Assembly: GCF_964194025.1 (NCBI RefSeq)
Contig: NC_134473.1
Span: forward strand, 14,136,001-14,200,000
Source of the DNA: Convolutriloba macropyga
Lineage: Eukaryota
Direction of reading: 5' to 3'
Length of the DNA: 64,000 nt
Shown here: positions 3,868 to 53,927 of the stretch, in pieces
Layout: each line of letters starts with the position of its first letter
Position numbering within the stretch: position 1 is the first letter of the stretch
Position numbers and translations under genes: made by a program
Notes under the pieces: generated by a model
Database searches by the model: none
What the model was told of the DNA's origin: nothing
The model's input: only the letters and a program-made list of their open reading frames with translations

Positions 3868-4160
3868 GATCATAAGCGAGGAGACAATACAGAAAAGTGC
3901 CGACTTCTATACGACCAGATACAGTCACAAGAAGCAAATTCACGAGAACACGACGTAAGACTGTACGTTGAGAAGGACTGGCCTCCCAAAGTGCAGAATA
4001 TCCAATCAAGGCCAGGTAGTTTCAATGGAAACAAAGAGGAGTCGACTGATACCGAAAGAGGGGGCAGATGTGAAAGGACGCCGTTTGATTTCATCAGTAG
4101 AGTGCAGTCCTTCACTAACAGGATGAAGAGAGAACAGAGTCCTATAATAGTAGTTGACAG
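3868..4160 (+). CDS. Receptor protein tyrosine phosphatase, R5-like (PTPRZ1/PTPRG/Ptp99A); internal exon A, D2 domain (upstream exons lie outside the window)
   Basis: Acceptor ttaacag|GAT and donor GACAG|gtgtgt (phase 2). Open frame DHKRG...EHDVRLYVEKDWPP...PFDFISRVQSFTNRMKREQSPIIVVD(R) resembles the R5 D2 segment EVRHFQCPKWPN...TFELISVI...GPMIVHD. Confidence 0.85.
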
Positions 4161-4646
4161 GTGTGTATCAACATGATGGAAATAGAAACAAACGATTCTG
4201 ATGTTGAGGCAATTGGGCTTTGATATCTTAATAAACAATTTAGTTCAGATGCGAAGCAAAACTGAAGCCATTTTGGGTCTTTTGTCGTTTTTATTTTTCA
4301 CCTGATTTCGTGGTCAATTATGGTTACGACCAAAAAATCAAAGGGTGACTTCGTTCGGTGACATGTATAACTCGTTATAGCTGAATTCATGTGCGTGATG
4401 TCATTTCTTACTGCATTTTTAGGGGTTTTGGCTCAGTTGAGTGCTAAATGTTTGCGGATAAATGACTTACCCCAAAATAAATGACTTTTGACCTACTCAT
4501 TCAATCTAAACTGAGAATCTAAATATTAATTGAAACTCAGTACAGGTCACCAGTGCAAAAAAATACAAAGTTATATTGCTTGAATTATATTAGTATTAAG
4601 AAATCGTGCTGAAAAACGGAAATCCTGCGAGAGAGACGCTTTGAAA

Positions 4647-5004
4647 GGTGTCAGGACAAAATACCCAAAATCAAAATACCCAATGTGACAAAATGCAATA
4701 TTTTATTCTTACGTTGAAACTATCAGAACGATTATTTAGCATAATTTTAGTTAGTGCAATTGGCCAAGCCTCTCTGGCCATGACAATGCCTCCCTCAGCG
4801 GCCTGTGGGACTTGTTATGAAAGTTTCACAACCCAACATGGGATTAAACTATCAACTTAATTGCGAGAAATCATGCTTGTAAATATCGAGTGCTAATTTT
4901 AATCGGATTATTGAACGAAAAGATCAAAGGAATTAAATTGGGTATAATGGCATTGGGTATTTTGGCATCGGGTATTTTGGCATTGGGTATTTTGTCATGT
5001 AACC
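4647..5004. mobile_element. MITE with 15-bp subterminal repeats, Mutator/Foldback-like
   Basis: Inverted ends ggtgtcaggacaaaatacccaa / ttgggtattttgtcatgtaacc, tandem ggcattgggtatttt units, and degenerate 9-bp flanks gctttgaaa / gctatgaag. Confidence 0.7.
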
Positions 5005-5013
5005 GCTATGAAG

Positions 5014-7698
5014 ACAAGGCGGCTCGGTAATGTGTGATCGCACATAATGTTCCGAACCGCTCACCCACATTTTCGGCATAATTGTCTGCCAAATGAGGAA
5101 CAGATGGAAAAACACAAAAAATTCAAGTATTTTTCAAAAAAAACTGGTGTATGAAAGAAAAGATAGCCTCCAAAGCAAATAAATCAGTGGAGTAAAAAAT
5201 GATGCATTAGATTGATGAAACATGCCGACATTAAGAAAGCGAGCGAAGACGAACGTCAAAATCAAACAACAACAACAAACATTAATTACATCAAAAAATT
5301 TATGTCCGTTTTGAAAAAAAAACTTTAAACAAAACAAAGTCAAAATAGCGTCAGATAAATTTGAAAATAATTAAAACAACTTGTAATTCACCAGAAAAAA
5401 AAGGTTATTCACCAGTTCATAATAAAGCTTGGTAACAATTAGACAAAAAAAACAGAAACCTTAAAGTTAAAAAATTAGCTGAATTTTTTTTTTTAAAAAC
5501 AGTTTAAGTCAAAGTAATGAAAACCATTAGGAATCATTTAAAATATCCCATAGGTTTAATATTACCAATGCTTCTATAGAAGGGAATTGAGAAATCTTGG
5601 TCTTTAATTTTTTATGCAGTTACAAAAAGATTAACAAATAGACAACAAACTAAAAATCAACTAAAACTTGCCAGAACATAGTTTGGAAGCCGCAAAGCCA
5701 TGCTTTGGGCACCAAAATATGTTCGATTGCACCTTCGTCGAACACCGATAATTTATTATGTAGCCACTCATTAATGAAAATGAGCAACAATTAGACAAAA
5801 AAGAAAAAAAGGCAAAATTATATAATACTTGTTTTTTTTTCGAAAAAAATTTTTTGACATGAAAGCCATTAATTACAAAATGAATAGATTTTTGAATAGG
5901 TTCGTCCATTCTTCCAAAGGAAGTCTTTGAGACCTGCAAATATCCAGAATATGTCTTACGTCTACAAAAAGAACGTCAAATATGACAAAAATAAAAAATA
6001 AATTTACTTTTTTTGTGAAAAATCCGTGTCGAAGACAGTAAAGTCATAACGAATTCTTTAAGAACAATAGATTTTGTGACACCAATCCCTTTTGACACCC
6101 TCCCCTGATATAAATAAAATCATTTTTAACCTTTTATCAACGAGACCAGGTAACAAACAGACAATAAATTGAATAAAATTGCGAAGTTGAAGCGATTTTT
6201 TTTCTTTTTGGAAAACAATTGTTTTCAAAGTCATGAAAGCCATTATCTATCTTCCAAAATCAGAACATCGGCTCATCATCTCTTCCAGGAAACAACAATC
6301 AAACCAGGTCATTGTACAAGAATTTAAATAGGACTAAAAAGACATAGCAAAAACGACAGTTAAAGACAAAATTAAAAAATTAAAAATTCTTCGAGAAAGT
6401 ATTGTCGAAGCGGTGAAGAAACACAATCTATATCTTTAAGGTTTTAAATATTATCAATTTTGCGTTGTTTTAAACGAGAAAAATCTGATATATGAACTGA
6501 CAATAACGTGATAATTTGACAAAACTAGAAAACATGAAAAATGGGCAAATATCTAAAAGTTTAAAAAAAAATGTGAAATCTAGTAGTATCAAAGCCAGAA
6601 CACCATAACTTATGGCCTAAAACCGCAATAAAAACTGAATGTGAACTCAGCAGAAAGAAGAAGGATTCTTTGAATGCTGACACTAAGCTACAAGTTGACA
6701 AAATTAAGAGAAAGATGGAGGCGAAGTTCAATAAGCCATTTTTATCAAATTTTTTAAATAATAAAATCAAATTTTTTAAAAGTCAAAACGACCATAAGCT
6801 TTCAAGCAATCAACTAAATAAATTATTTTGAGCTAATAAAGAAGCCAATAGGACCTATAACTAGTGAGCTTTGATTTGAAATGTTCTGTTATTTAATTAA
6901 TATAAAAAAGGACCAATTTTTTTTTTTATAAAAAACCGACTGATGACAATCCGAATTATTTTTGGATTGTAACGGTTCAAGGTTGGTACAGAACTGGTAT
7001 TGCTAATGCTGATTGACCATTAGGAATTTTCAATTTTTAGAATGTCATTGATATAGATATTTTGTTTGTTAAAAATCAAAAATAAATGCTGCGTTTTTGA
7101 TAATCAACGAATAAAGTTAGCAAAAAACGGCAGAGTTTTATTTACTAAGCACTCTTAACGGAAGTTGAAGTGGAAATCGCTCCTTTTTCAGTCCACAAAG
7201 ACTGTGTTAGTAGTGTTTGGGTGTGCACTTCCTGCAAATTTAATCAGAGTGGACTAAAGAAACTTATTTTGTGCTGTTTTTGATGAAAGAGTCTGAATTT
7301 TGTGAAATATTTAGCCAGAATTTGTGACAAAAAAAAGTTACTGAAAACAACCGACAATATATTTTGTCTTTAAATGTAAAATCAACAACATTTTCTTAAA
7401 AACATTTATTAATTTTTATCAAAATTGACAAAATTTTAGTCAAAAATTCCGAAAAAGGTGAATGAAATCAACGGAATTCACTCTATTTTCTCAAAAGTTT
7501 AAACCTCGATATCTACCTGTCAAAAACGAAAATCAAAAAAATCTTTTTAATTCCATATTCTACGCTGGACAAGCTTTCTAATGATACCAGTCTCAAATCT
7601 CTACGATGAATATATCGATCGGCCAAAATTGACTGAACAGAAAAAAACCCCATTTCAGTATATAGTTCCTCCCCCCTCAAGAGGGGTCGGAACAATAA
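5014..7698 (-). mobile_element. Helentron/DINE-1-like element, copy 2 (full length, inside an RPTP intron)
   Basis: Begins acaaggcggctcggtaatgtgtgatcgcacataatgttccg and ends ggggtcggaacaataa: reverse complements of the two termini of the 44364-47390 copy. Confidence 0.8.
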
Positions 7699-8306
7699 TA
7701 CGTTAGGCCAGTTTTTCTGAAATCACCAAATTCATTTTTCAAACTCTGCCTATGTTGTAGTTATCAATTAGCCATAATCTGTTTTTTTATCGATCTGTTC
7801 AAGAAACTTTTAAGAAAACTGCGCTGATAATCTAATTCGAAGAAAATGTCCAGCAATTTTACAAATCAACTTTTTGAGGTTTTCAATGTCTTCTAGTGCT
7901 CAAAGTTTTTAGAGAATGGTCACACATTTACTGGGTGATTATCAGACACTAAGTCAAATTTTGCTAATAATAAGATTTATGATTGTGGATGATCAGATTT
8001 TACAAAAACTTAAACTGTTGCGCTTTTTTTTCAATTTAGAGAAATGAGCGTTTCGACGATAATCTGAGGCTTGCTAAGTGACCCAAAACTATATAGCTTC
8101 TAGCACCTTACATTGGTACACTTGAAAGTGTTAAGTGACAAAAAAAGGCATCAATAAAACTAATTATGTTATAATTGACATATTCACATCACATAAATTT
8201 AATCCCTATCATACAAGATAAAAAGTTTGTTAAAATTGGAGAGAGAATTCTCAGAATAGATATTTTTTTTTCATGGAAATCACAGAATAGAATTTTCTCA
8301 TGACAG

Positions 8307-8442
8307 GTTTGGTGGTACAAGTGCATCTGTGTTCTGTGCTCTGTGGACAATGAAGAGACAGTTGGAGAGAGACTCCTTCGTAGATGTGTACCAGATTGTA
8401 AGACTATACCAGAGTGCACGCAGTGGTCTCTTCACTAATAAG
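8307..8442 (+). CDS. RPTP exon B (136 nt): D2 pseudo-catalytic loop to Q-loop
   Basis: gacag|G acceptor and AAG|gtaatc donor. Completes R, then FGGTSASVFCALWTMKRQLERDSFVDVYQIVRLYQSARSGLFTNK, matching PTPRZ1/PTPRG D2 GGVTAGTFCAL...QLE.E..VDVYQV. Not in the ORF track. Confidence 0.92.
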
Positions 8443-8926
8443 GTAATCAACCCCTAACCCATTTAGATTGACTAGAGCTAATTCAGCGCATCTTTTTCCA
8501 CCAGCAGCGCTGAAAATTACAATTAGCGCTATCATAGTCTCTCTCAAAACCTTCTCGTGATAGTCAAGTGTGAAAGTCAATAGCAAAATTGTGCAGTTTT
8601 GAACTTCTGTTTTGATCGATTGAAAAACTCGTTCTGAAATCAACGCAAAATTGGAAAAATTTAAAAATCTCTATTGAGTTTTAGACGTACCAAAAAGAGT
8701 TTGCATGAAAACTAGATTATCGGTAATTGCAATATCGAAGATTGTCGTTGATTTTGCAAGATGATTTTGCAACACGATTGTTATCTTGCTGGATATTGCG
8801 AGATTTTGGAAAAAAAAATTGCCAGACAAATGTATCGTTTTGCAAGAACTTTGACTACGCTCCAATAATCGGTATCATAAAACCGCTTTTAAATCGTTTT
8901 TATTTTTAAAGATGACCCTATTTTAG

Positions 8927-9165
8927 AGCGATTACCTGTACCTGTTCCAATCAGTAGCTAGCCACGTGAACAGCAACCGACTCCTGTCACCCAGACACCG
9001 ACTAGCAACTGCTGAGGGTAGTCCTCTTAGACCCTACAACCCCCTCGCTTTCTTCACACTCAACAACCGCAACCCTAACATACATCAGCACTCTGACAGA
9101 ACAGGGCACCGCCTGTTGCCTGGCAACAACCATGGAGGAGGTGGAAAGCTGCAACTGCAAAATAG
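8927..9165 (+). CDS. RPTP exon C: end of D2 domain and start of C-terminal tail
   Basis: ttttag|AGC acceptor in phase 0 gives SDYLYLFQSVASHV (equivalent of EQYQFLYKVIL), continuing in ORF 8966+. Donor AATAG|gttggt (phase 2). Confidence 0.85.
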
Positions 9166-9518
9166 GTTGGTTCAAATATCATTGAAAATCAGAAAACAGA
9201 ACTTTTGTCCCGCGGTTTTTTTTCGTAAACTCAGTTTGAACAATTTAATGCTTATTTTTCAGTCGGTAATACTTTTTATGACCATTTTGTAATACCTCGT
9301 ATGAAATCCATTACCATTCATGCATACATACCGTTAAAATGGTGTATAAATGTCCGAGTGTGGGCGTGGGGTAAAGCTTAATATATTTTTTTGTATGTTA
9401 TTCTTGCTGATTTTGATTCTTTCACTGGAACTGTTTTCGTTGGAACTGTTTCATGTGTATGCATACAGAATATAATGATATGCATAAATTGTAATGGACC
9501 GTCGAATATAAAAATGCT

Positions 9519-9676
9519 TTAGCTCGACTCATGAAAAAACCGTGCTCAACTTTGTTTGGCTAACAAAAGACTTAGCTGGACCTATGAAAGACTCTACCTC
9601 GACTTAAGCTAAGTGCTGGACTCATTAAAGACCCCCACTAGAATTCCAAAGGCAGTTCATGAGTCGAGGTCTGGGA
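9519..9676. repeat. Fragment of the 'atgaaaagac/ctcgac' MITE family
   Basis: Same subrepeats and 3' end (gtcgaggtctggg) as 15300-15622 and 56395-56650. Confidence 0.5.
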
Positions 9677-9843
9677 TGTTATGAGTCTACATACAACATT
9701 ACATAAGCAAAACCATGTATCAGTTGGTTCACACCGTCTAATGAACAAAAAAAACAATTTATTTACCGCAGTGAAGGGAGACAGTTTCTTTTTGCTTTCG
9801 AAAATTAGAGCTGGAAAAGAATCACGAATCACAATGTTCTTAG

Positions 9844-10111
9844 GTCTGTTGATCAACTCGACCAGCGCATTGAATCTCGCCAGAGTGTGAACAACCCCGA
9901 GAGCAGCGACAATCACTATGACTCATCACACGACGAACGAGACACTCTAACTGATTCGTACCTTTTGCCCTCAAACTTACGAGTACAACTTCCACCCTCC
10001 AGTAAACATTCGGGTCAAAAATCGCGCAAGAAAAGCAAAAGTAACCCGAACTACAGAAACTCATATAATCATATTATGTCTCATTCGCAGGACAATATAA
10101 TTTATTCCTAA
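9844..10111 (+). CDS. RPTP terminal exon D: Ser/His/Asn-rich tail to the stop codon
   Basis: cttag|G acceptor is phase-compatible with exon C. Reads RSVDQLDQRIESRQSVNNPESS...DNIIYS*, followed by further in-frame stops (taa tga tga). Confidence 0.7.
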
Positions 10112-12327
10112 TGATGAGAAAATTGTGTTCAATTAGAATTTCTGTTAATTTTCATCTGGTTAATGTGAAATCATCAATAGTGTTAATTTGTATTTTTAAT
10201 ATAGATCAGTGAGCTAATGCACAATTTATTCTTACTGCTTTTCTTGAACTCGAAAACGTAGTTGTTGGTTCTCGAAATTTGTCTCAATTGGCCACCGTTC
10301 TCGATTTTGTTTCGAAAAAGGAATGCTTTTTTTTTCGACATTTTTCTTTTTGAGACGCCTAATTCATTAAAATTCTGAGGAACAATAACAGTACATTATT
10401 TGACCGCTGTCCAAAAATCCAGAATACATACTCGATTTTGTCGGGGTTTTTCAGGAACACATGTTTTAATATTAACGTTCCAAGCATGTCGGTAGAAACC
10501 GGTGACACTAGGGCAATTTAGTTCAAAGTTCGTTATATGAGCCCCCACTGTTCTTGAAGCGCTATTATAAAAACCTGGGACAATATTTGGGCAATCGTTT
10601 CCGTGGCATATGTAACTAATTTCCACGTCATTCAATTCCACGATTACAGCGAATAAAAGAAACGAAAATGGTTATAGTGTTACAGAAATGAAAGAAAACC
10701 TTCTGGGTGATTAATTTATGAAATTTCCCTCGATACTATTATTGAGTGATGAAGACAATAGGTGGTTTCACAAATAACCATAGCACTCTTCACAAGAACA
10801 AATGAGTCTTTCAAATTGGAGTCAACATTAAAATCGGCAAATAAGTTTCAGTCTTAACATATGCTCAAATTATGGTATAATGATCTGTGAATACTTCCGA
10901 CAAAACGTACGACATTTACATCATAGAAGTAACTTATTTCCACGTTCTGCATAACTAAATTCCATTGTTGAACACATTTGACTTGTTAAAAGTGGGGACA
11001 CGTTTTGGTCACTCAATTCCACAAAACAGAGAATCTATTGAAACTTGCTTTTTAGGACATTGGCCACGTAGTGCATTGCTATTCTAAATGCAAATCTACA
11101 TACAATAACAGTAATGCAAAAATGTTTTTACATCGTTCCGTTAAAATATCTTTGACAAAGTTGCTAAAACAATTTGGAGACATGTAGTCGATTGTAGCCA
11201 AAAAATTCAACATACAGAAACAAGTCAAGTCCGTGAACGCCAGACGGTGGTCGAAACTGATTCAAAAAGTGTTACCACTAAAAGTAACCGTGGAACATTT
11301 AAAAGAAAAATTTCTCGATTAAGTCTAGGTTAGTTGTTTTTTTTTAGATAGGAAACAAGCATTTTGGATAAACCTCCTTTAAAACTTTAAAACTTTAAAT
11401 TTGAAGTTTAAATTACAAAAACATGAAGGTTTCCTTATTACCTTTTATGTAATGCGTCTTTGACCTCCACATCCTAGCATTTTTCCTATCTTTCATGCAA
11501 ATAGTTTTGCTAAGTTGTTGTCTACAATTTTAATTGCTCTGCATTTTTATTAGTTGTAAAAATTATATAGCTTTTTTTATTGTTTGGATTTTTTTCAAAT
11601 TATTTTTATTTACAAATGAATTAATTTAGCAATGTTTAGCTCATGGATTTTGCTGAAATTGCCAATGTGTCCTTCTTGATAAATTATTTCTAAAATATCG
11701 TGAGTCGTGTTTTTCTCATAACGATTCTTTGATTTTGAGTTTTCTGTTTGATACCTGATAAGTTTAAAATTGTAACAGTTTGATAGTTTGATGTCATTTT
11801 GATGACAAAAATATCTCCGAGAAGATAAAAAATATTTGATCATTTCTTTTGAGATTCAGTGATTATGTTCTCAATAATTGATGATTATGTATAAGTGATT
11901 ATGTATCCAAATCTAAGCATCTAATTATCAGATATATTAATTTTAGTTTTCTTTCTTTTTTATTTCGATATATGTTTTCCTGTCCTATGCTTTCACAATT
12001 TGTTTTTAGGTTTGGTGATTTTTTAGTGCCATAAAACTTATTATTATCCAGATCTTAACATCTTAAAAAATTTGGCCGTTTTTAAACTTTATAAGATATT
12101 TTTCTAATAAAACAAAAATGTAACACTTTCAAGACTTTACATGGTGTTTTTTGTAAAGTTTTTCTGCTTAAACAGATTTAATTTCTTTTAACCCCTCAAT
12201 TTTAAGATTGCTTCAAAAATTTCAATGCTAGAATTTCTTTTTGGTTTTAGTTTTTCAGTGGCTTTAATTTTCTCCAAAAGTTTCACCAATTTCAGTTAAG
12301 CCACAGAAAAAGAGTTTAAAAACAAAC

Positions 12328-17156: not shown

Positions 17157-17566
17157 ATGGTCGCGATTTTCTTTAATGTCTCTGAGCGATTTTTGCAGTG
17201 GTTTTTGTACGTTTTTAATGTAATACTTGTCATTGTAGCATTAGTATATATTATCTTAGGAGGTTGGATATTTAGCCTACTTACAAGTTATGCTGTTTTC
17301 GACATACAAAAGGTTGCAGCAATTAATGGAATTTTATTATCCTCAGGATTGCTTTTAATAATCGCTGTGATTATTGGTTATATCGGAATATGTGGCGAGT
17401 ACAAAAGGTTAGTGTATGCCTATTCCGGGATGCTGGGTATCCTAATGCTGCCAGTATTAGCTGTTGGATGTTATGCGGTGTTAATGGGTGAAGATGTGAG
17501 GGCAGATCTGATAGGAAGCATGAACAAATCATTGGAGGACTACACAAAGAGGGAAAATATCAGAGA
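17157..17566 (+). CDS. Tetraspanin exon 1 (TM1-TM3 and start of EC2)
   Basis: ATG, three hydrophobic segments, FLQWFLYVFN and IGYIGICGEYKRLVYAY motifs typical of tetraspanins. Donor AGAGA|gtaagt (phase 2). Confidence 0.93.
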
Positions 17567-17620
17567 GTAAGTAGAATAAAATCAGAATTGAGCTTAACTT
17601 GAGACGAAAAAAATGTGTCA

Positions 17621-18408
17621 CCCCGGATGAGGTGCGCAGATCAGATTCCCATCCAAATTCCGGTTGTCCACCATAAAAGAAACTAACCAATCAGAAAATG
17701 TTTACGGAAACTTACTAAGCATACAACGATAAAAAAGTTTTAGTTTGGTGGCTGAACATTCCGCAAAGCCAATTGTAGTTCCAAAACAACGGTTTTGGGC
17801 ATACTCTCCAGACAATGGAAGCGTTTTTGATCAGTCCGTATGGAATCGGACCATGTTCAGACTATCCAGATCATACCACAAACCTATCCTGACCTAGAAC
17901 ACTCTATGGTCAGAATATCCTGGCTCTGGATGGGGCTCTGATGAGCTCAGCACATACGACCTGGATAGTCTGATCAGAGCAGTATCTACGGTCAGTGCCC
18001 AGAGCTCTAACCCGGAAAACGTTCTTTCCCCAGAAAGAAAACTACTAAAATTTTTTACTGAAGCACTCAAAAACTGTACACATAAATTGACGTCAATTTT
18101 TCTGAAAAAATTCTTTAAGCCAATGATTACTGCTACTTCAACAGTTTCGGTCGGTGTACCCCAGTTTGTAACCCAAGTAAGTCTGGCACCATCAGTACGT
18201 GACCCAAGTTGGCATTACTATGGCACCTCTAGTGGGTAACCCATGTAGGTCTGACAGCCCAGCGTGCAACCCAAGCGGTTCTCATAGCTCTATTTGAGAC
18301 TCGAATTTAACTGGTCAGACCCGATTTCGGCTTGATGGTCTGGTACCTCCTGTGCACGGCGCGTGTAGTCTGATCAAAGCTGGTGTGAGTCGCACACCTC
18401 ATCCTGGG
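17621..18408. mobile_element. MITE with 17-bp CCC...GGG TIRs and 2-bp CA flanks (EnSpm/CMC-like)
   Basis: ccccggatgaggtgcgc vs gcacacctcatcctggg (15/17 inverted match); tctgatcaga/ccagac motifs shared with 61679-62617. Confidence 0.7.
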
Positions 18409-19509
18409 CAATAATCCTATCCGGGAAAAATTGATGGTAATGCCTTGCTGAATTTACTTTTCAACTGACATTGCAAAGAGAAAATTAATTGAAAAAAACT
18501 TTGGTTTGATTTTGTTTAAAAGTGACAACTTCTTTTCTCTCTTCGAGGTTGCGTTTTCTATTGTATAAGTGACATTTGGTTATAAAAAATCTTTTAATTT
18601 TTAATTTTGGTGGCGTACATTTTCGTGAAGTGATTGCTCTAATCTATCAATAACTTTTAGTTGACGACCTCTGCAAAAAAGATTTGAAATCAATTACATA
18701 CAAAGTATAAAGATTTAGAAGAAGAAAAGTTAAAACTTTTATACCTGTTTTATAATGCAATCAATCCTCGTTAAATATCAAATATTCAAATTTGCTGTAG
18801 TTTTCAAATTTGATGATATAATGAAGCTTAAAGAATTGAAACTGCTTTTTCCCAAAGTCTTGATTGCTTATATTTACTTATTTCGGAATTGCAATCTTCG
18901 AAATGTTTCTGAATAACTCTTGTTTTTTTTTCAAAAGCAATTGAAATACATGTTTTCTTTTAAAGTCGCCACTTCAAGGAGCTTGTCATCACTGTCGTCA
19001 ATTCTTTTTACTGTTGCACGAATACTAATGATTCTGATATGTTAAGCTTTTTATTGAAATCTGAAAAGCGTTTTCCTTGTTGATCGGCTTTCGAGTTTCA
19101 TTTTTGTTCAATCTACCTACTTTGAGTAAGGATCTAAACATTTATTGTTTTCGCCTGAAAAGGCAAACAGTTCTGCTCTATTGCCCCAAAAATCAAAACT
19201 TCCAAGAGTAATGAAACGTTTCTCAGAACAAACTGGCAAGAAATTTCCAGTTTCAACGAATATTCGCTGGTTAATTTATTTTGGAGTTAAAAATATTGAT
19301 TTTTTTAGACAGTAATTGGAATACAATGCATAATTGACTACATACACCTGAAATTGAGTTTCCATTTTTGCATTGCGCTAACCTGCAAATTTGTGGTAAA
19401 AATTAGTTCATGTCGAAAATAAATTCAGAAACGTCATATTGTTTAATTTTTTGGTTGAACTAAAAGCTGAGTGAATTTTTCACAATTTGTTTAACCTTTA
19501 ATTTTACAT

Positions 19510-19709
19510 NNNNNNNNNNNNNNNNNNNNNNNNNNNNNNNNNNNNNNNNNNNNNNNNNNNNNNNNNNNNNNNNNNNNNNNNNNNNNNNNNNNNNNNNNNN
19601 NNNNNNNNNNNNNNNNNNNNNNNNNNNNNNNNNNNNNNNNNNNNNNNNNNNNNNNNNNNNNNNNNNNNNNNNNNNNNNNNNNNNNNNNNNNNNNNNNNNN
19701 NNNNNNNNN
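19510..19709. other. Assembly gap
   Basis: 200 N. Confidence 1.
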
Positions 19710-21330
19710 CAAAAATCAGCCGCAACCCTTAAAACTTAGACAAAAATCTTGTAAACCAACCCACCCCCATTCACCATATTTTGATGTCAACTCTGAGACA
19801 TGAATACGGGACCATAGGAAGCAAGAAAACAAAATTTAAAATACATATGATGCACCCACTATTCATTTCTTAGTGCAAAAATCCCTGAAATCGACCTAAA
19901 TCCCCATTCAACCCCCAAAAATTGACACACCAACATCTGAACCACCCCACGCCGTGCAACCAAATTTTGTTATGAGTTCTGGGACATGCCTAAGAGACTC
20001 ACAGACTGCAAAAGAAGAAGTCTTGAAGAACACATGATGCATCCACTGCTCAAATCTTACGGCCAAATTGGCCAAAAGACCACCCCCACTCCACCGAAAC
20101 CACATGCCAACTCGTTAACTACCCAGCCCCCCCTTACGATATTTTGACATGTGTTTTGGGACATGACCAGGAGACCCCCAAGGCACCATGAAACAAATTT
20201 CAATTTATACATGATGCTCCCCTACTCAATTCTTACTGCCAAAATTTGGACAAATTGGCCAAATTACCACCCTAATCCACCGAAACCAGACCCAAACTCG
20301 TTAACTACCTAACCCACCTTCACCAAATTTTGGCATGTGTTCTGTGACATGTCATGGTGACTGCCAAAGTACAATGAAGCGTTTTTCGAATAATGAATGA
20401 AGCACCCCCTACTGAATCCTTATGGCCAAATTTGCTCAAATTGGCCAAAATAGCGTCCCACACAACAGAAAGCACCCCCCCAACTTCTGGACCACCTAAC
20501 CCCGCGACCTCAAATTTTAACATGTGTTCTGGGATATCATTACGGAACTCCCAGACCACAAATCAACACATTTACAACAATATATGAAACCTGACATGTC
20601 AATTTACCCTTAAAATGAGGTCAATTGGGGTCAAATACAGACCCCGCGACATGAACCCCCAAACTCCCGAAGCAACAACACAAACCACACCACATTAACA
20701 CAGAAGTTGTGGGGCATCATTACTGAACTCATGGGGTCTATTACAGCCCAGTAATACCCGTGAAGACATCAGAATTGTGAAATTTGGGTGAAAAACGATC
20801 AAATTGACTCAAATAGCCCCCCACCCGACATGACCCCCCCAACCCCCCAAGCACCCCCACCCCCCCGACCAAATTGACACATAAGTTGTGGGACATCATT
20901 ACCGAACTCATGGGGCCTATTACAACTCAGTAATACCCGTTTAAGACATCAGAATTGTGAAATTTGTGTGAAAAACGCTCAAATTGACTCAAATAGCCCC
21001 CCACCCGACATGACCCCCCCAACCCCCCAAGCACCCCCACACCCCCGACCAAATTGACACATAAGTTGTGGGACATCATTACCGAACTCATGGGGCCTAT
21101 TACAACTCCGTAATAACCGTTTAAGACATCAGAATTGTGAAATTTGGGTGAAAAACGCTCAAATTGACCTAAATAGCCCCCCCACCCGACATGACCCCCC
21201 CAACACCCCAAGCACCCGTACCCCCCAACCAAATTTACACAAAAGTTGGGGGACATCAGTAGGGAGCTAATGGAGTGTATTACAGCCCAACAATACACGT
21301 TATAACAACAGAATTTCACCATTTGCTGAG
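19710..21330. repeat. About 180-bp C-rich tandem array (about 9 units, the last 3-4 highly similar)
   Basis: gacatcagaattgtgaaattt at 20765, 20945 and 21125; degenerate t(g/c)tgggacat anchors recur at about 180-190 bp back to the gap. Confidence 0.85.
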
Positions 21331-22219
21331 AAGAATTGGGCTAATATGGCAAAAATAATACTCCCAAAACAGTCAAATATCTCCAAACTGGCTGCAACAA
21401 ATTTGTTCGGCAATAGCGCAAATCAAAGGTCGTTTCAAGCTGCGTTCATATCATTAAACCATTCTGAAATTGATTCACAAACTTCAGAGAAATTCATGAT
21501 ATAAGGTTCCGTACCAAATACCCATATTACCCACTTCTTCATCAGGTTATACAGTTATAACTTCATCAAATCAGAACTTTGAACAATGAAACTTTGTGGG
21601 AACCTTTGTGGGACTATGACAAAGCTATACATTAACAAAACTCCATTAAAATGGGCCATTAACACACTTTTCTCACCCAAAACAGGTCAAGTACCTGTCA
21701 TTTCGGGCTGAACCCGACTTCAAGTATACCGGCCAATTTCTCAACAGTGGCTCAGAAAACACTATAGGAAACTTATATGGGCTGAAAGAGCAGTTCAAAC
21801 TACGCTTCATATCCAAAGATGGTGCAAATCGGTGCATTTTTCACGGAGATATTAAGGTATAAAGGTCCCGTACCAAATCGAAAAATTTGACCAGGTACAT
21901 CTGACGTTTTGGGTAAGTTCCCTTCGAAAACCCGTTACACCCATAAAAATTTATACTGTTCTGAACTCAGGGGATAATGGGGAATCTGAAACACTATAAC
22001 ATGTCTACAAAAACTCATTTTTTACAACAACGAAATTTGGTGCCCTAGAAGGCAAAATAACCCAAATTTAGGACAAGTTTCTTAATGAATTTCAACCGTA
22101 GACCACGATATCACGTTCTCACATTCAAAGGGAATTAAGAGTAGCTCACCACGAGTTGAATGATACCATTCCTGTTAAATTTGGCTCAGTAGTTTTTGAG
22201 TATTTTGAAAATTACTATC

Positions 22220-25200
22220 ACTTACCCCAATTTTTACCTCAAAAATTGAGGTTCTGTGCCAGTAAACCGGCAAAATCACCCTTCAAACTGTTGAATCAAG
22301 CTGTATTACGGTTACCATGGCTTAGTAATTAACTACCATGGCCATAACACCTTTACCCACGGTTGGGAAACATGTTCCCAACCGTGGGTAAAGGTGTATT
22401 TTGGTTGTGTAGAAATTCGAAGAAAAAAACGATATCCGAAGTGGGTAAAATTGGGCAAAACAGGAAATTGTTGATCTGATACAAATTATTGTCACCAAGG
22501 GCTCTCTAGGGTATAAACTAGGGAGGGAGAAGTAGAATCAGCTATCTGTTTATTGTATTTTTGTTTTTTGCACAGGAAATGTCAAAATTCGTTGAACAAG
22601 ATATTACCAACTGAACAACATTCGGATTCAGAACCAATGGTACATATTTTGCAAAATTATATAACTGGACACCCATATAAACAACAGAACTGCTCAATTC
22701 GGCTTAGGAGATCATTTTGTTGATGATTATGAAGTCAGTCTGTCTTGAAACAAACAAAATAGCGCTTTTTTGGTTAAGAGAAAAACTGAATTTTGTTTTT
22801 CAAAATAGCTTTTGACTTGAACACCAGAATGTAGTTGGCATTGAATTCTGCAATGGAACAACAAATAGGCTTATAGAGATATTGCTTTTGCTACAGTGTC
22901 AATACTGCTGAGGATTTGTTACTCAAAACCAAACAAGAAACAAATTTTTCAAACCAAAAAAAAAACAATTGACTCTGTGTTGACATAAATATATGCAAAG
23001 CTGGTTTATATTCGAAGAAAAAATACTGGTTTGACAAGGAATACTTTGAGTATCTAATCATGTCTACTCATTTAATAGTTTGAAGAGAATTTCGAAAATT
23101 AGTACCACAATTGTTTTCTCGAAATTGAGGTTCTGAGCCAGTAAACCAGTAAAACCACACTTCAAACTGTTGAATCAAGCTTTATTCTGGTTACAATGGC
23201 ATAGCATGGCTTATCAGTTAGCTACTGCGGCCACAACACCTTTATTCATGGTTGGGAAACATTTCCCAAACGGTGGGTAGAGGTGAATTTTGGTTGTAAA
23301 AATTCGAAGAATAAAACGATTTCCAAAGAAAGTAAAAATGCTCGAAACAGGAAATTGTTGATCTGATTAAATTGTTGTCATCAAGGGCTCTCTAGTGTAT
23401 AAACTAGAGCGGCAGAAGTTGAATAAATTATCTCTAAATGGGTTTTATTTTTTTGAACCGGAAATACCGAAATTCGTTGAACAAAATATTACAAACTGAA
23501 AAACATACGGATTCAGAACCAATAGTGCATATTTGCTAAATTTTATAAAATTGACACCCATATAAACATCAACGCTACTCAGATTCTGCTGAATAAATCA
23601 ATTTCTTCTTGATTCCAAAGTCTGTCTGTCTTGAAACGAGCAAAAAATTGCTTCTTTGATTTAAAAAAAAAACTGAAGTTTTTTTTACAAAATTGCATTT
23701 TAGCTGAAAATCAGAGTACAGTAGGCGTTGAAGTATATTGAAAAAAAATGATACTACTTTAATAAGGAACATTTTAAGTATCTAATCATGACTACTCAAT
23801 TTAGTTGGAAGATAAATTTGAAAATAAGACCGCTTACCACAATTTTTTCCTCGAAAACTGAGTTTCTGTGCTAATAAACAAGTGAAACCATTTTCAAACT
23901 GTTGAATCAAGCTGCAATCTGGTTAGCACGGCTTAGCAGTTAGCTACCGCGGCTGCAACATTGTTATCCGGGGTTGGGAAACAAGTTCCCAACCGTGGGT
24001 AAATGTGTATTTTGGTTGTATAGAAATTCGAAGAAAAAAACGATATCCGAAGTGGGTAAAAATGCTGAAAAGAGGAAGTTGTTGATCTGACGCAAATTAT
24101 TGTTACCAAGGGCTCGCTAGTGTAACAGCTAGAGAGTGAGAAGTTGAATAAGCGATCTGTTTATAGTGTTTTAGTTTTTTGCACAGGAAATATTAAAATT
24201 CGTTGAAAAGGATATTACCAACTGAACAACGTTCGGAATCAGAACCAATGGTCCATAAATTAATAATTTGTAAAATCTGGACACCATTTAAACAGCAAAG
24301 CTACTCAAATTCTGCTGAATAGATCTTTTTGTTCTTGATTCTGAAGTCAGGCTGTCTTGAAACAACCAAAAAAAATATCTCCTTTTTTGTTTAAAAAAAA
24401 CTGAAGATTTTTATTCAAAATTGCATTTGAGCTGAAAACCAGAGTACAGTAGGCGTTGAATTCTGCGATAAAACAACAAATAGGCCTTGCTAGTTGTTGT
24501 TTTTGCTACAGTGTACAAAACTGATGAATATATATTCCTCAAAACCAAACAAAGGCAAATTTTTCAATGCTATAGAAAAAGAAAGAAAAAAGGAATTGAT
24601 TCTGTGACGTAAAAAATTGGCAAAGCTTATTTATTTTCAAAGAAAATAATACAACTTGACAAGAGACATTTTTAGTATCTAATCCTGTCTACTGAATTTA
24701 GTTGGAAGACAATTTTGAAAATAAGACCGCTTACCACAATTTTTTTCTCGAAAACTGAGTTTCTGTGCTAATAAGCAAGTGAAACCATTTTCAAACTGTT
24801 GAATCAAGCTGCAATCTGGTTAGCACGGCTTAGCAGTTAGCTACCGCGGCCGCAACATTGTTATCCAGGGTTGGGAACCAAATTCCCAACCGTGGGTAAA
24901 GGTGTATTTTGGTTGTATAGAAATTCGAAGAAAAAAACGATATCCGAAGTGGGTAAAAATGCTGAAAAGAGGAAGTTGTTGATCTGACGCAAATTATTGT
25001 TACCAATGGCTCGCTAGTGTAACAGCTAGAGAGTGAGAAGTTGAATAAGCGATCTGTTTAGAGTGTTTTAGTTTTTTGCACAGGAAATATCAAAATTCGT
25101 TGAAAAGGATATTACCAACTGAACAACGTTCGGAATCAAAACCAATGGTCCATAAATTAATAATTTGTAAAATCTGGACACCATTTAAACAGCAAAGCTA

Positions 25201-26608
25201 CTCAAATTCTGCTGAATAGATCTTTTTGTTCTTGATTCTGAAGTCAGGCTGTCTTGAAACAACCAAAAAAAATATCTCCTTTTTTGTTTAAAAAAAACTG
25301 AAGATTTTTATTCAAAATTGCATTTGAGCTGAAAACCAGAGTACAGAAGGCGTTGAATTCTGCGATAAAACAACGAATAGGCCTTGCTAGTGGTTGTTTT
25401 TGCTACAGTGTACAAAACTGATGAATATATATTCCTCAAAACCAAACAATGGCAAATTTTTCAATGCTATAGAAAAAGAAAGAAAAAAGGAATCGATTCT
25501 GTGACGTAAAAAATTGGCAAATCTTATTTATTTTCAAAAAAAATAATACAACTTGAAAAAAGACATTTTGAGTATCTATTCATGACTACTCAATTTAGTT
25601 GGAAGATAAATTTGAAAATAAGACCGCTTACCACAATTTTTTCCTCGAAAACTGAGTTTCTGTGCTAATAAACAAGTGAAACCATTTTCAAACTGTTGAA
25701 TCAAGCTGCAATCTGGTTAGCACGGCTTAGCAGTTAGCTACCGCGGCTGCAACATTGTTATCCAGGGCTGGGAAACAAATTCCCAACCGTGGGTAAAGGT
25801 GTATTTTGGTTGTATAGAAATTCGAAGAAAAAAACGATATCCGAAGTGGGTAAAAATGCTGAAAAGAGGAAATTGTTGATCTGACGCAAATTATTGTTAC
25901 CAATGGCTCGCTAGTGTAACAGCTAGAGAGTGAGAAGTTGAATAAGCGATCTGTTTAGAGTGTTTTAGTTTTTTGCACAGGAAATATCAAAATTCGTTGA
26001 AAAGGATATTACCAACTGAACAACGTTCGGAATCAAAACCAATGGTCCATAAAATAATAATTTGTAAAATCTGGACACCATTTAAACAGCAAAGCTACTC
26101 AAATTCTGCTGAATAGATCTTTTTGTTCTTGATTCTGAAGTCAGGCTGTCTTGAAACAACCAAAAAATATATCTCCTTTTTTGTTTAAAAAAAACTGAAG
26201 TTTTTTATTCAAAATTGCATTTGAGCTGAAAACCAGAGTACAGTAGGCGTTGAATTCTGCGATAAAACAACGAATAGGCCTTGCTAGTTGTTGTTTTTGC
26301 TACAGTGTACAAAACTGATGAATATATATTCCTCAAAACCAAACAAAGGCAAATTTTTCAATGCTATAGAAAAAGAAAGAAAAAAGGAATTGATTCTGTG
26401 ACGTAAAAAATTGGCAAAGCTTATTTATTTTCAAAAAAAATAATACAACTTGACAAGAGACTTTTTGAGTATCTAATCCTGTCTACTGAATTTAGTTGGA
26501 AGACAATTTTGAAAATAAGACCGCTTACCACAATTTTTTTCTCGAAAACTGAGTTTCTGTTCTAATAAACCAGTAAAACCACCTTTAAAACTGTTGAATT
26601 AAGCTTAG
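22220..26608. repeat. 897-bp tandem satellite (about 5 units)
   Basis: aagaccgcttaccacaatttt at 23826, 24723, 25620 and 26517; two more diverged units begin near 22220 and 23100. Confidence 0.93.
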
Positions 26609-26844
26609 GAAGAAAGAAATGTGTTTTTTTGTTTGTTGAGAAACTTTTTGGAGTATCTAACGTCGTCCAGAATTGTTGATTTTAATTCTGAAATTATGAA
26701 AAGCAGCTGTCTCAAATGTTTTTTTTTTAATATGGGTTGAACTTATTTTCTACAGGATGGTGTTTTCAAATGTGCTTAGTTCCTAATTTAGCTTACTTTG
26801 GCTGTTTCCTATCGTAATGGCACGATTCTTCCAAAAAAAGTTTA

Positions 26845-26997
26845 TCTTGCAAGATTCTTACAAGATTCTTATAAGATTAACTCCTTCTTGCAAGATCTTG
26901 CAAGAATAACTCTGTCTTGTAAGATCTTATAAGATTAACTTTTTTTTGCAAGAATCTTGCAAGATCTTACAAGATTAACTTCTGCTGTCGACTCGGG
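26845..26997. repeat. 'tcttgcaaga' palindromic-subrepeat MITE remnant
   Basis: Iterated tcttgcaagat / tcttacaagat ending gtcgactcggg; more degraded similar tracts lie near 3600-3840, 8700-8850, 43280-43420, 43640-43750 and 52210-52400. Confidence 0.6.
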
Positions 26998-27351
26998 TAG
27001 CCCGTGTTTTCCGCCGAAGATTATGATAAAGAAACATGACGTTTGCTTTTGCTCTTTCGGTAATCTTGAACTAGTCTGGACTTTTACTGTCATCTTTGAC
27101 AGATGATTTAATTTAAGGAACCTTTATGTTCGTAAGTCTAATCTTTAGTCTTCAGCGCACCGTACCCCCCCCCCCGGGTCATGCATATAATCGTCGGATG
27201 ACAAGAAGTGCGAATCCCAGCGTGGGTAGATTATTTTTGCTGGGTTGTTGCACCTGCAAATTAAATTGAACTAAATGTTTCGATATATCTCTTACAGGAA
27301 TCAAATTGAGAACTAAAAATAATTAAATTTTTGTTTTTTTTTCCTCTTCAG

Positions 27352-27682
27352 AAGTTGGGATATAATTCAAATCGAATCAAGTTGCTGTGGTACAGACGGA
27401 GCATCCGCTTGGTTGACTGTTTTCCCCAACCAAACAACTGTACCCGATTCCTGTTGCGTAAACTACAACCTAAGTTGCGGAGAAAATTTGGATAATTTTG
27501 ACTCTACGGAACTTTTCCAAGACCCCTGCGGAACGAAAGCCGGTGACGAGTTTGAATTCCTAACCCTGTTACTGGGAAGACTTGCTCTGGTGTTTGGAGT
27601 TCTTCAGCTTGGTGGAGTGTTGGGAGGGGTCGTTTTGGGGCTGGCTTTTGAAGAATTGTACAATTATCATGCCATAGCGTAG
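27352..27682 (+). CDS. Tetraspanin exon 2 (EC2, TM4, tail); spliced product 246 aa
   Basis: Long pyrimidine tract then cag|A. Joins in frame as E-SWDIIQIESSCCG...VPDSCC...C...DPC, then TM4 (FGVLQLGGVLGGVVL) and tail LYNYHAIA*. Confidence 0.93.
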
Positions 27683-31649: not shown

Positions 31650-31825
31650 TCATTCCATGCAGCTAAACTGTCCCTTTCTTTCGTCTCCACAGGTACTGGG
31701 GTTTCCACTGAGCAAGGGCATTGTGCATGTCTTTTCCATGGTCACTGGGTCGCACAGTCCACACTTCTTAACACTGTGATCCCATTTGCATGGGTCACTC
31801 ACTGCGTATTCTTGGTCTGGACCCA
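31650..31825 (-). CDS. PTN/MK-family terminal exon 5: variant six-Cys C-type domain
   Basis: ttattag|TG acceptor (phase 1). CKWDHSVKKCGLCDPVTMEKTCTMPLLSGNPSTCGDERKGQFSCME* aligns to PTN CKY..WGECDLNTALKTRT..L...C.........C. Confidence 0.78.
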
Positions 31826-35487: not shown

Positions 35488-35754
35488 TTCCTGGTATTTT
35501 GTCGGGCATGAGTGACTTGGGGTAGTAGTTAATGCCCTCTTTCTCCCCCAGAATGGTCAGTTTCTTGTTTCCCCCACCGCTCTTGTCCTTGGACTTGCTC
35601 TTGGACCCACAAGTCTTAGTGTCTCTCTTCATACTAGGGCAGGTGAGTCCTCTCGCGATTGCCCTGTTATTGCGCAGCCTCCTTAGCCGCTCCTTCATTC
35701 CGTTCACGCATTTGCTCCATGGAGCCTTTTCCCACCGGCAGTGTTCATCATCTT
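35488..35754 (-). CDS. PTN/MK-family exon 4: basic C-terminal-type domain and Lys/Ser-rich linker
   Basis: gttcag|AA acceptor and GGAA|gtaagc donor (267 nt, phase 1-1). CRWEKAPWSKC...KERLRRLR...CPSMKRDTKTC has Cys offsets 0,10,33,43 versus 0,10,32,42 in PTN. Confidence 0.85.
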
Positions 35755-36655: not shown

Positions 36656-36811
36656 NNNNNNNNNNNNNNNNNNNNNNNNNNNNNNNNNNNNNNNNNNNNN
36701 NNNNNNNNNNNNNNNNNNNNNNNNNNNNNNNNNNNNNNNNNNNNNNNNNNNNNNNNNNNNNNNNNNNNNNNNNNNNNNNNNNNNNNNNNNNNNNNNNNNN
36801 NNNNNNNNNNN
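36656..36811. other. Assembly gap inside the PTN/MK-like gene
   Basis: Run of N; could hide an exon. Confidence 1.
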
Positions 36812-41774: not shown

Positions 41775-42199
41775 CTGAAACATTTATAAAAATCAGCAAA
41801 TAGTACACAAGTAGGACTGAAAAGTTTTCCAGACACAACATTGTCCAATTATGATCATCCAATCCAAATCTATTAAACTCTGCTGCATAACCGAAAAAGT
41901 TACCTTGTTTTTTTAATCAGAAAATACACTCCAGGCTAGTAGCCGTCAACTTTTGCCAAACCTGCCTTATATTGTTTCATACAATCATATCAACAAAAAT
42001 CGCAACCTTCATTGGCGACTTATAAGCTGTTCCACTATCGCGCCTCCAGTTTCTGTTACATAGACATGAATCTTTTTTGGAATTTTATGGACCATAATGG
42101 CACGTTTTATGGTTGAACAGTTTGGTGATCCCTGGATGTTACCCAGTTTTAATGGATTTTTAGAATCGTCTAGATATAAGATGTAAAAAGAATGCTGAC

Positions 42200-42403
42200 C
42201 CCAGATACATTTTGATCCAGAGTTTGGACCAGGAACGGGTGGAGGAGGGAGCTCGCAGGACTTGAAGCATCTGGAAGTGATTCCTATGATTCGACATCCC
42301 TCTCCACTCCTGGTTGCGTGTTGCTTCCCCACCCCACACATTCCATAGTTGAAGTAACACTGGCCCCAAATCCATCGTGAACAGTTGGGCTCATTTGCAA
42401 GCA
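42200..42403 (-). CDS. PTN/MK-family exon 2: N-terminal-type domain (3' boundary uncertain: 42200, 42143 or stop at 42009)
   Basis: ctttag|TG acceptor (phase 1). CSRWIWGQCYFNYGMCGVGKQHATRSGEGCRIIGITSRCFKSC has Cys offsets 0,8,15,29,38,42, the same as PTN C15-C57, with WxW, CGxG and TRxG conserved. Confidence 0.88.
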
Positions 42404-47300: not shown

Positions 47301-47390
47301 CTTCATTATTTGGTAGCCAATTAAGTCAAGAATGTGGATGAGCGGGGTCGGAACATTATGTGCGTACGCACATCACCGAGCCGCCTTGTT
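44364..47390 (+). mobile_element. Helentron/DINE-1-like element, best-preserved full-length copy (about 3.0 kb, non-coding)
   Basis: 12-bp subterminal inverted repeats tgttccgacccc (44368) / ggggtcggaaca (47344), perfect palindrome atgtgcgtacgcacat (47358-47373), CTTGTT end, no clear TSD. Confidence 0.82.
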
Positions 47391-50300: not shown

Positions 50301-53300
50301 ATGAGAAACATTAGTTTTTCAGAAGGCTTTAGTTCATCTGCAAAATTTTGTACGTTATCTGGGATTTCAGACGCCATGCAATAAATATGCGATAAATACA
50401 TGCATTCTTTTGTCTGGTGAAGAAAAAAACTTTAAGCAATTTGCTTAAAAATTTTTGTTCAGATGGTACCCGAAGCAATTATTGATTAAAATTGCAGAAC
50501 ACTCACAATTCTTTCAAAAATTAATGCTTAGTTTTTAGGATTCATGTTTGTTGTCACAATCCTGATCCAAATTCAATTCATCGAGATTGTCACGAAGAGC
50601 AAAGTATTTTGCGCGAGACTGTTAGTGTAAGAAAGGTAAGTTTTTCTCAGGAAAAAATTTCTTCAAATATCAATTTGCAACCGAAACAAGCACAAATTTT
50701 TTTCAGATAAAATCTAAAGGAACTGAGCTTTACAAAAACTTTGACAGCAATTGCAGCAGAAAAACTCTTTGCTACTGCAAAACTGCAAACCAAGTTGACT
50801 TCTTGCTGGAATGAAAAATTAGTAGCATTAATATCTGCGCCCTGCTGCATCCAGCACAAATTTTTTTCTTTCAGAGCAAAACAGACGAGAATTCCGAAAC
50901 ACGTTAAAACTGTTTAAGCGCATTTCTCTAGTTATCAATTAAAAATGCAGAACAAATTAAATAATAATTTAAAAAGATTAATTTAGAAATTTCCTACAAT
51001 TTAGGATAATATATTCAAAAGTGCACAACGAACAAAACTTTTCACATATTTAATAATCCTTGAGCCTAAAAAACCCCAGAATGAAAGCATGAGTTTTAAT
51101 AATCAGAGTGAACAAAAATAAGATGAGACAACTTTGAGATGAAAATGTTATAATTATTTGAAAAAAAATTACTGATTATTTTTTTCTTAATTACTAATTA
51201 TTGATTTGAAAGATCTTATAAATTACTTCATTCAAAGAAGAAAACTGTAACTGCTGCCATGAGTATAAACAGGCAAAAAATGCGGAGCTTTAAAAAAAAA
51301 TCTATCAAACAAATAAATAGTATTCATGAATTTTTTCTTCAGATGCTTAGATATTTTTATCTGTTAAATTTCAACATGACTCTAGATTAAAAAGGGAAAA
51401 CAAATAGTCAAAAATTTTAATCAGGTGATTAAGTTAGTCGTTTGGAGAACATCAAAAACAGAAGGTAATAGCTTTCTGCATTAAATTTTTGAGGCTAAAT
51501 GAGTCTCCAGAGATTAAATAATTTTTGCAAGTAACTCATTAGTTCTCGTTTTCATTTCGAAATTGTACAATTTATGTGGCTCTTTTTCTAAAACTTTGTT
51601 TTTTTTCCATTAAAATAAAAAATGCACTGATATTTGCTTCGACTGGAATCAAATTTCCAGCATACAAAATCCTGAAAACTTTAACATCGTTGTAAAATTT
51701 AATTACAAACAGAAAGTACTGCTTTCTTGAAAGTTCATTAAAAAAATAATGGAAACCAAATTTCGTTTCGCCGAGATACCTCAAGACACAACCCGATACA
51801 AAAATACTAATATTTTCAACGCAAACTGAACGCGATGAAAATTGTAGTGTGACGATTTTTCAATTAATTGATCAAAAATATTCAAAAAATAAAGCCTATA
51901 TTCAGTCTTTTCTATGAAATTAAAAGAAAAGGAAGGTTTTGCCCTTTTTTCTGAAAAACTGTGAACTAATGATCTTTTGATAAAAAATTATTTTTATAGG
52001 ACGTTGTTACGTTCCGAAAGTGTTGAATCCTTACTGAGTACTAAGTTGTACACATAGAGGACGAGCCTTTTTCAGAAAATTTTTTGCACTCCAAATTTCA
52101 TCAATTGTTGAAAACCTTTAAATTGGCAAAACCGAAATAATTTTAAATCTTCGGACCCAATTTCCCTCAAAAGAAGAAAATGGTACAAGTACTTACTAGA
52201 GATACCATGAAAACTTGTGACAAAGTCTTGGCAGATTCTTTACACAAGACTTTCTTTCAATTTTGCGTTTATTTTTAAAAATAGGGATGATTAAATAGCA
52301 TGATTTTGCAAAAATTCTACAACACAACCTCGAAACCTTGATTGCGAAAAATCCGCGTTTGTAGCAATTATCTTGAAAAATCTTACCAGATACTGGTCTT
52401 AGGTATCATAGTTATCTCTTAGATAAATGAGGTTTCCATCGCTGCTCATGGTAAACTAATTACTAAATTTTGTTTTGTTTTCAGTAAATTCTCCGCTTGT
52501 TTTCCGATTGTCACAATTTTTTATTTAATTTTAAATGACAGTTTCTTCCCTCCTGTGGAATCAGTATCGCTTATCACTTGATGCAGTTTTCGATTTCTAG
52601 TTAGAGTTTTTAGGTAATTGTCATGGCATTTTTCTTCTACTGTTGACATTAGTGTTAGTCATAATACACAGGCGAAAAAGTACTCTAAAACATAAATTTA
52701 AATTGTAGCTTTTCAAAAGACTCCCTTAACGTATTTCGGAGCAAGTAAATTCGAGTGTTGAGGCATATAATTGTCTCAGCAAAAGCCTTCCTTGTTTTAA
52801 AAAGCCAAAAGAGGCAAACTTCCAAGAACTTTAATTACTTGAAGATACATAGATGTGCCGGAATAATAGATCATAAATTTGAGTTAGTACTATTCGTAAG
52901 CAAATGGCCAGTCAAAAGAAAATTTTGACTGCGCAAAAAAAGGATATCTGAACCTTTTGGGCCGAGTGCGGCAGATTTTGCTCCGCAGCCATTTTGGACA
53001 AAGTATGATTGTTTTTACATTTGTTGGTCAACCAATTTTTCATTTAAATTAGGGCAACCATCTTAGAGCAACGAGCAAAACAAATACTATTTTCTAAGAC
53101 AAGTCCATGTCGCGTCAATTTTTCATGAAAAATGTCATAGTTGAGATGGTTTTCGTTGTCGTTTCCCACTTGCAACTCAAGCACGCTTAGTCAACTACGT
53201 TTTTTCTTCAAAATATATTAAAAAATGAAAATCGGCATCGGAAGCTAAATTAACATTTCAAACAACTTTCTTATTGTAGATTTTGAGATTCTACAGCTAA

Positions 53301-53782
53301 CCTGGAGTTAACCCGAAGTAAAATTCAGCACTGAATCATTAAATTAAGGCATTTTCAGTGACCCGCTTCAGAGTCATCGAGCTATTTTTTGTTCAAGTTG
53401 AGGCAAATGCCAGCTGATTTATACGGGTCGGAAAATAAAGATTAAAACGCTAGACCGTGGGTCCGCATGTCGTTTTTTCGAGTTCTCTCAGCCCTAAATA
53501 GTTGTTGCATTTGCTGTTGAAAGTACAGCGTGTTGGGGGGGGGGGGGAGGCGTACTCATTAGACCATCTGGTCTTACGCTCTCGAACTTGGGTATCTCTT
53601 AAAACCCGTTCTCCTGATCTTTCTTGTACCTCGCGGCTTATTTCTCTCGCCAAGTATACGTTGAACAAGTAGAGCTTCTTGTCAAGCTAAGTCAAGCTTA
53701 TCTTATGCACAATTGACATTTAGGTTGTCTCTCTCAACTTTTTGATAAATTGGTGGGTTTTTATAAAAAAAAAGTGACATAC

Positions 53783-53927
53783 GTGACACTTCAATATGGG
53801 GTGGTAGTGGTTTTTGGGGCAGCTGTTCACCTATTGTCCATTTGCTGGGCAACACATCCCCGCTCGCCACAGACACACAAATGGTCAGCATGAACGAAAG
53901 TGAACAAATAAAAAAAGCAGCTGGCAT
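53783..53927 (-). CDS. Pleiotrophin/midkine-family gene, coding exon 1 (signal peptide and Pro-rich segment); may extend to the in-frame ATG at 54092
   Basis: MPAAFFICSLSFMLTICVSVASG/DVLP...KPLPPHIEVS has a signal-peptide pattern. Donor TCAC|gtatgt (phase 1) is compatible with the acceptor at 42403. Confidence 0.7.

Follow-up and report, generated by a model that had tools for sequence, protein, structure and literature searches.

The analysed window comprises 64,000 bp of the genome of Convolutriloba macropyga (contig NC_134473.1, positions 14,136,001 to 14,200,000 of the forward strand) and carries three genes: the end of a receptor-type protein tyrosine phosphatase (RPTP), a tetraspanin gene and a gene of the pleiotrophin/midkine (PTN/MK) family. 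The most likely reading of this arrangement, and a probable one, is the neutral adjacency of three ordinary, separately transcribed genes. The first gene would be the 3' end of a tandem-domain R5-like phosphatase with a competent first domain (D1) and a pseudophosphatase second domain (D2). The second would be a 246-amino-acid, six-Cys tetraspanin, closest to CD63 and TSPAN12, and the third a 237-amino-acid secreted PTN/MK homologue in which a signal peptide is followed by the N-domain, the C-domain, a Lys-rich stretch and one more Cys domain at the C-terminus. Their order would be a neutral accident, and neither a functional nor an ancestral module.

Each of the three genes has its own start. 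RPTP (+ strand, stop at 10111) and the PTN/MK gene (- strand, stop at 31650) are convergent with the third gene between them, and a shared promoter is therefore not available to them. An earlier note on this stretch had placed the two stops about 21.5 kb apart in convergent orientation, and the models agree (31650 - 10111 = 21,539 bp, with the tetraspanin in between). In vertebrates PTN/MK pairs with PTPRZ, and in the fly Miple has been proposed as the partner of Ptp99A; by analogy, this phosphatase quite possibly has the secreted PTN/MK-like protein as a ligand. In Drosophila, Ptp99A is named for 99A and lies on 3R. The miple1/2 genes are situated at 61B3 on 3L (PMC4224452); phosphatase and ligand genes are thus unlinked in the fly, which was counted in favour of neutrality.

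Several points weigh against a neutral accident. It is uncommon for a ligand family to be located two genes away from the receptor family best known for it; a rough estimate for some 1000 ligand-receptor pairs puts the chance expectation at about 0.2 such cases per genome. Human PTN is on the same chromosome arm as PTPRZ1, about 15 Mb away. One human deletion interval of 5.4 Mb and 20 genes contains both TSPAN12 and PTPRZ1 (PMC3492093). Searches with the proteins described here retrieved no orthologous locus from another species, and the frame searches of tetraspanin exon 1 and PTN/MK exon 2 returned only open reading frames (ORFs) from an ENA assembly of apparently the same organism. With respect to the class of the phosphatase, one D2 exon on a second copy of the locus (ENA contig ctg26593, described below) scored higher against PTPRE D2 (33.5 bits) than against PTPRG D2 (26.5 bits).

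Part of this evidence would also fit a linkage kept from an ancestor, or a signalling block under common regulation, of which human 7q31-q33 (TSPAN12, PTPRZ1, PTN) would be the dispersed remnant; this explanation is considered unlikely. The adjacency in the window is real in this case, and besides the shared deletion interval in human, the best solved-structure match of the large tetraspanin loop is TSPAN12 (29 bits, E 8.7e-6). Miple-Ptp99A is also seen as the fly equivalent of midkine-PTPRZ1 (PMC13382465). However, the TSPAN12-PTPRZ1 parallel is weak, since TSPAN12 is ahead of CD63 (27.3 bits) by only 1.7 bits, and the cluster closest to this tetraspanin in the Atlas is 'CD63 antigen-like' (score 0.94). 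The location of the fly genes on different chromosome arms and the 15 Mb between human PTN and PTPRZ1 also stand against it, as does the position of the human paralogues MDK and PTPRG, which are unlinked on different chromosomes. It seems quite unlikely that genes for an R5-like phosphatase, a tetraspanin and a PTN/MK ligand stood side by side as far back as an early bilaterian, with the tight linkage kept in this genome and only TSPAN12-PTPRZ1...PTN at 7q31-q33 left of it in humans. The same three gene families do occur on one chromosome segment in human and here, but the human spacing is in megabases against 50 kb in the window, and the tetraspanin here is at most a candidate orthologue of TSPAN12. 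If the linkage were conserved, it would be a rare instance in animals of ligand and receptor genes staying side by side, and it would support an old partnership between PTN/MK and R5 phosphatases, which is still debated outside vertebrates. For the three genes of this window, neutral adjacency is preferred.

Gene models were built by hand from stop-free frames and the surrounding sequence. The window is AT-rich (GC about 30-35%) and repeat-rich, with eukaryotic exon-intron structure. A script check of the models showed that all introns are GT-AG, that phases are consistent and that the coding sequences all have lengths divisible by three. Both stretches of N are intronic and leave the reading frames uninterrupted. 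The positions that the earlier note had given for RPTP, the tetraspanin and the PTN/MK gene could be confirmed by these models. Its statement that only three genes are recognisable holds as well: among the selected frames covered by the Pfam scan, no other long frame tested was above family cutoff, and the Rfam and tRNA scans of the window gave no match. The identities proposed for a PTN/MK-family gene and a complete tetraspanin stand, and so does that of an R5-like RPTP, with the R5 label taken from best-match scores and an Asp signature and not from a tree. The present yield consists of curated models of three divergent genes, namely the PTN/MK homologue with an extra Cys domain, the apparently R5-like phosphatase with an Asp-type D2 predicted to be a pseudophosphatase, and the tetraspanin.

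The window holds the last four exons of RPTP (3868-10111, + strand). D2 exon A (3868..4160; AG acceptor 3866-3867, GT donor 4161) covers the degenerate WPD-loop region up to ...SPIIVVD. It is an open frame with WPP and an insertion of about 25 amino acids at the WPD loop, and its protein is 98% identical to that of the second locus copy. No match to exon A was found in the PDB, nor by phmmer in 1.84 billion representative proteins. It is therefore divergent, and the lack of matches fits a decayed pseudophosphatase domain. D2 exon B (8307..8442, with an alternative in-phase acceptor at 8286) encodes the PTP-loop equivalent PIIVVD/RFGGTSASVFCAL and matches Pfam Y_phosphatase (profile positions 175-221, E 0.0012). 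Exon C (8927..9165), with AG/GT boundaries and fitting phase, completes D2 (SDYLYLFQSVASHV) and leads into the C-terminal tail. The last exon (9844..10111) encodes a Ser/Lys-rich tail ending in -IIYS, with stop TAA at 10109-10111. In positions 1-3702 of the window no PTP exon was found, nor any counterpart of the sequence upstream of exon A in the second locus copy.

The search with the tetraspanin exon 1 ORF returned one database protein, encoded on ENA contig ctg26593 (41.9 kb). This contig aligns with window positions 3703-10962 and 16506-18472; identity is 85-95%, and structural differences occur. It is probably the other haplotype, because the same ENA assembly also has a contig that is 100% identical to the window. 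The earlier note had proposed to recover the exons upstream of the window, which succeeded in part: D1 and further D2 exons were found on ctg26593, while the ectodomain lies upstream of both window and contig. The D1 exons match Y_phosphatase profile positions 55-82, 128-177 and 177-222, and the D2 exons positions 14-36 and 37-88, collinear with exon A of the window. Once the ctg26593 exons are joined with the C-terminal part of D2 from the window, tandem PTP domains D1 and D2 are present. D1 includes VTQYHFTEWPDH...VMVHC and SAGYGRTGCYIAIDSM... and carries an intact active site (HC/SAGYGRTG), from which it is predicted to be catalytically competent.

Several lines of comparison support the placement of this phosphatase as R5-like, i.e. 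of the PTPRZ/PTPRG/Ptp99A kind. Against all PDB chains, exon B gave its best matches to PTPRZ D2 (36.9 bits) and PTPRG D2 (34.5 bits), with lower scores for other subfamilies (CD45 D2 20.7 bits; PTPRA 16.5 bits as whole-sequence score). The D1 active-site exon of ctg26593 scored 45.1 bits against PTPRG D1 and 42.1 against PTPRZ D1, with other single-domain chains at or below 34.1 bits (LAR D1 31.4, PTPRE D1 31.5); the scores of the D1 WPD exon do not separate the RPTP subfamilies. At the position of the catalytic Cys, D2 has an Asp, whether acceptor 8307 or 8286 is used. This residue aligns with the Asp of PTPRZ and PTPRG in the P-loop (VVDRFGGTSAS here, VHDEHGGVTAG in PTPRZ, VHDEYGAVSAG in PTPRG), whereas CD45 D2 has a Cys. 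Given VVDRFGG and the degenerate WPD loop, D2 is predicted to be a pseudophosphatase. The tandem D1-D2 arrangement is common to this RPTP, vertebrate PTPRZ1 and PTPRG, and Drosophila Ptp99A. Some differences were seen as well: the tail ends in -IYS here and in -SLV in vertebrates, and the insertion in the WPD region of D2 is without any match. The ectodomain of vertebrate R5 RPTPs consists of carbonic-anhydrase-like and FN3 domains, whereas here the ectodomain exons are located beyond the window and the 41.9-kb contig. The architecture combining carbonic anhydrase and phosphatase domains has been argued to be vertebrate-only in origin (PMC11788884).

Comparison of the two copies gave 12 differences in the 936 bases of the four RPTP exons (nine synonymous and three nonsynonymous codons) and six in the 410 bases of tetraspanin exon 1 (five synonymous, one nonsynonymous). 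Exon divergence thus amounts to 1.3-1.5%, with 14 synonymous against 4 nonsynonymous codons, whereas the surrounding intron sequence differs by 5-15%. This low and mostly synonymous exon divergence indicates that the RPTP and tetraspanin exons are under purifying selection.

Upstream of exon A the two copies, otherwise about 5% divergent, show a large structural difference at window 1-3702. In the second copy (L003 upstream of 14309) the preceding D2 exon is situated only about 1.4 kb before exon A. The RPTP D1 intron on ctg26593 also contains a Pao/BEL-type long terminal repeat (LTR) retrotransposon (L006 2560-14016), with direct repeats of about 430 bp (L006 2561-2993 and 13608-14016), a polyprotein of 2273 amino acids on the opposite strand and an additional Gly/Arg-rich ORF of 370 amino acids (L006 10001-11113). 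The stored gene calls of this contig (L005 4501-5573) run through TAA and TAG stops; the gene caller of the ENA assembly apparently translated with a code other than the standard one, and the resulting gene list has no meaning for a eukaryote such as this.

The PTN/MK gene consists of four exons on the - strand (53927-31650) and encodes 237 amino acids, with all introns in phase 1. Exon 1 (53831..53927), known from the model only, starts at ATG 53927 with the hydrophobic, signal-peptide-like sequence MPAAFFICSLSFMLTICVSVASG and ends at a GT donor in phase 1. Exon 2 (42230..42403) encodes a candidate N-domain that has the motif RWIWGQC and six Cys at spacings of 7-6-13-8-3; it matches Pfam PTN_MK_N (PF05196) with E 0.003 and 18.2 bits, below the cutoff of 20.4, and an ENA contig is 100% identical over it. 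Exon 3 (35488..35754) encodes the C-domain (C-x6-W-x2-C ... C-x9-C), behind which comes a tail-like stretch rich in Lys and Ser, and matches PTN_MK_C (PF01091) with 28.7 bits, over the gathering cutoff of 25.3 (E 1.7e-6, positions 3-58 of 65). Exon 4 (31650..31825) contributes a further domain of six Cys, for which Pfam gave no match, and ends with TGA at 31652-31650, and the 3' untranslated region extends to at least 31322. The hydrophobic N-terminus and the basic stretch GSKSKSKDKSGGGNKK were read by eye from the model, and from the hydrophobic start a signal peptide and hence a secreted product are predicted. A single-sequence AlphaFold prediction of the C-domain exon was unusable (predicted local distance difference test 60, predicted template modelling score 0.29, all helix).

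Four public runs were compared over 31000-36600, of which three are DNA-like with covered introns and one, X8, has depth over exons only, with none over the unique intron parts. In X8, a transcript-like contig of 709 nt (record 25, depth 177) joins 31825 to 35488, which is exactly the predicted junction of exons 3 and 4, so the PTN/MK gene is expressed and spliced as modelled there. This contig, which reaches 31322 in the 3' untranslated region, carries two coding differences (31653 and 31692), both synonymous by codon reading. Transcript support covers the junction 31825-35488, and the junctions 53831/42403 and 42230/35754 come from the model.

The predicted protein shares a four-Cys C-domain with PTN/MK and Miple1/2, and the introns of its gene are likewise in phase 1; a putative signal peptide, a candidate N-domain of six Cys and a basic Lys/Ser-rich stretch would be further points in common. 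Vertebrate PTN/MK are shorter than its 237 amino acids, and the six-Cys C-terminal domain of exon 4 is extra relative to them. The protein is too divergent for relatives to turn up by sequence search. Its exon 3 frame gave no homologue in a database of 5.8 billion proteins, and phmmer with exon 3 against the PDB returned no midkine or pleiotrophin entry. Such results, together with an exon 4 without Pfam match and Atlas look-alikes of exon 3 that are clusters of TSP_1 (all under the guide of 170 shared features), could point to a lineage-specific, thrombospondin-repeat-like secreted protein that is no functional PTN/MK orthologue and is unrelated to the phosphatase. This is very doubtful, however, as Pfam found PTN_MK_C above cutoff together with PTN_MK_N, in the canonical N-then-C order, and gave no TSP_1 in the frames of exons 2 and 3. 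The Cys spacing, the W-x-W-G motif and the Lys-rich stretch presumably also fit those of human PTN/MK. Membership of the PTN/MK family is thus the assignment retained for the minus-strand gene.

Two further observations were made within this gene. A very high-copy repeat is suggested in intron 3, directly abutting exon 3: at 33805-35487 and 36423-36600, the word depth of the DNA-run contigs climbs from some 50-80 to values of 10^5 to 5x10^6. Just downstream of exon 2, an open frame of 135 codons on the - strand (window 41512-41916, CDKDETVKEPKPLPP...) has no Pfam match and could be an alternative exon or an accident of composition.

The tetraspanin is encoded on the + strand by two exons in matching phase, which together give 246 amino acids. 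Exon 1 (17157..17566, ATG at 17157) contains transmembrane segments 1 to 3 and the first part of the large extracellular loop, and matches positions 1-123 of the 225 of Pfam Tetraspanin (E 8e-12). Exon 2 (27352..27682) contains the fourth transmembrane segment and a short tail ending ...YNYHAIA, with stop TAG at 27680-27682, and matches positions 133-222 (E 7e-11). From this coverage of the profile, no tetraspanin exon is missing. The loop has six Cys with CCG and PDSCC motifs. Four transmembrane segments, CCG and PxSCC motifs and six loop Cys are common to this protein, the CD63 family and TSPAN12. The C-terminal YxxI-type motif (YHAI) resembles the sorting signal of CD63, and the long cytoplasmic tail of TSPAN12 is absent here. 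CD63 and TSPAN12 are matched nearly alike, and either would be at most a candidate human orthologue.

The intron between these exons (17567..27351, 9.8 kb) holds an N stretch (19510-19709) and two tandem repeats. One of these, at 20064-21258, is GC-rich (0.43 against about 0.32 around it) with a unit of about 180 bp; the other, at 22148-26600, has a unit of 897 bp in at least four copies of 84-96% identity. The other N stretch (36656..36811) is inside PTN/MK intron 2. ENA contig ctg24257 (39,021 bp) matches window 37467-46934 without a difference and by its coordinates runs about 16 kb past exon 2 towards exon 3, so that an independent contig passes this second N stretch. The join across 19510-19709 is supported solely by the two tetraspanin exons, which fit each other exactly. 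A wrong join there, placing RPTP and tetraspanin exon 1 beside tetraspanin exon 2 and the PTN/MK gene as a scaffolding artefact, is highly improbable: the interval of 18.5-25.8 kb is full of tandem repeats and spanned by no independent contig, with ctg26593 stopping about 0.9 kb past tetraspanin exon 1 and ctg24257 beginning, by coordinates, near 25.8 kb, but the exons on either side are in phase and combine into a complete Pfam domain and a normal protein of 246 amino acids. Just past tetraspanin exon 1, at window 17897-18236, frames are open on both strands (113 and 106 codons).

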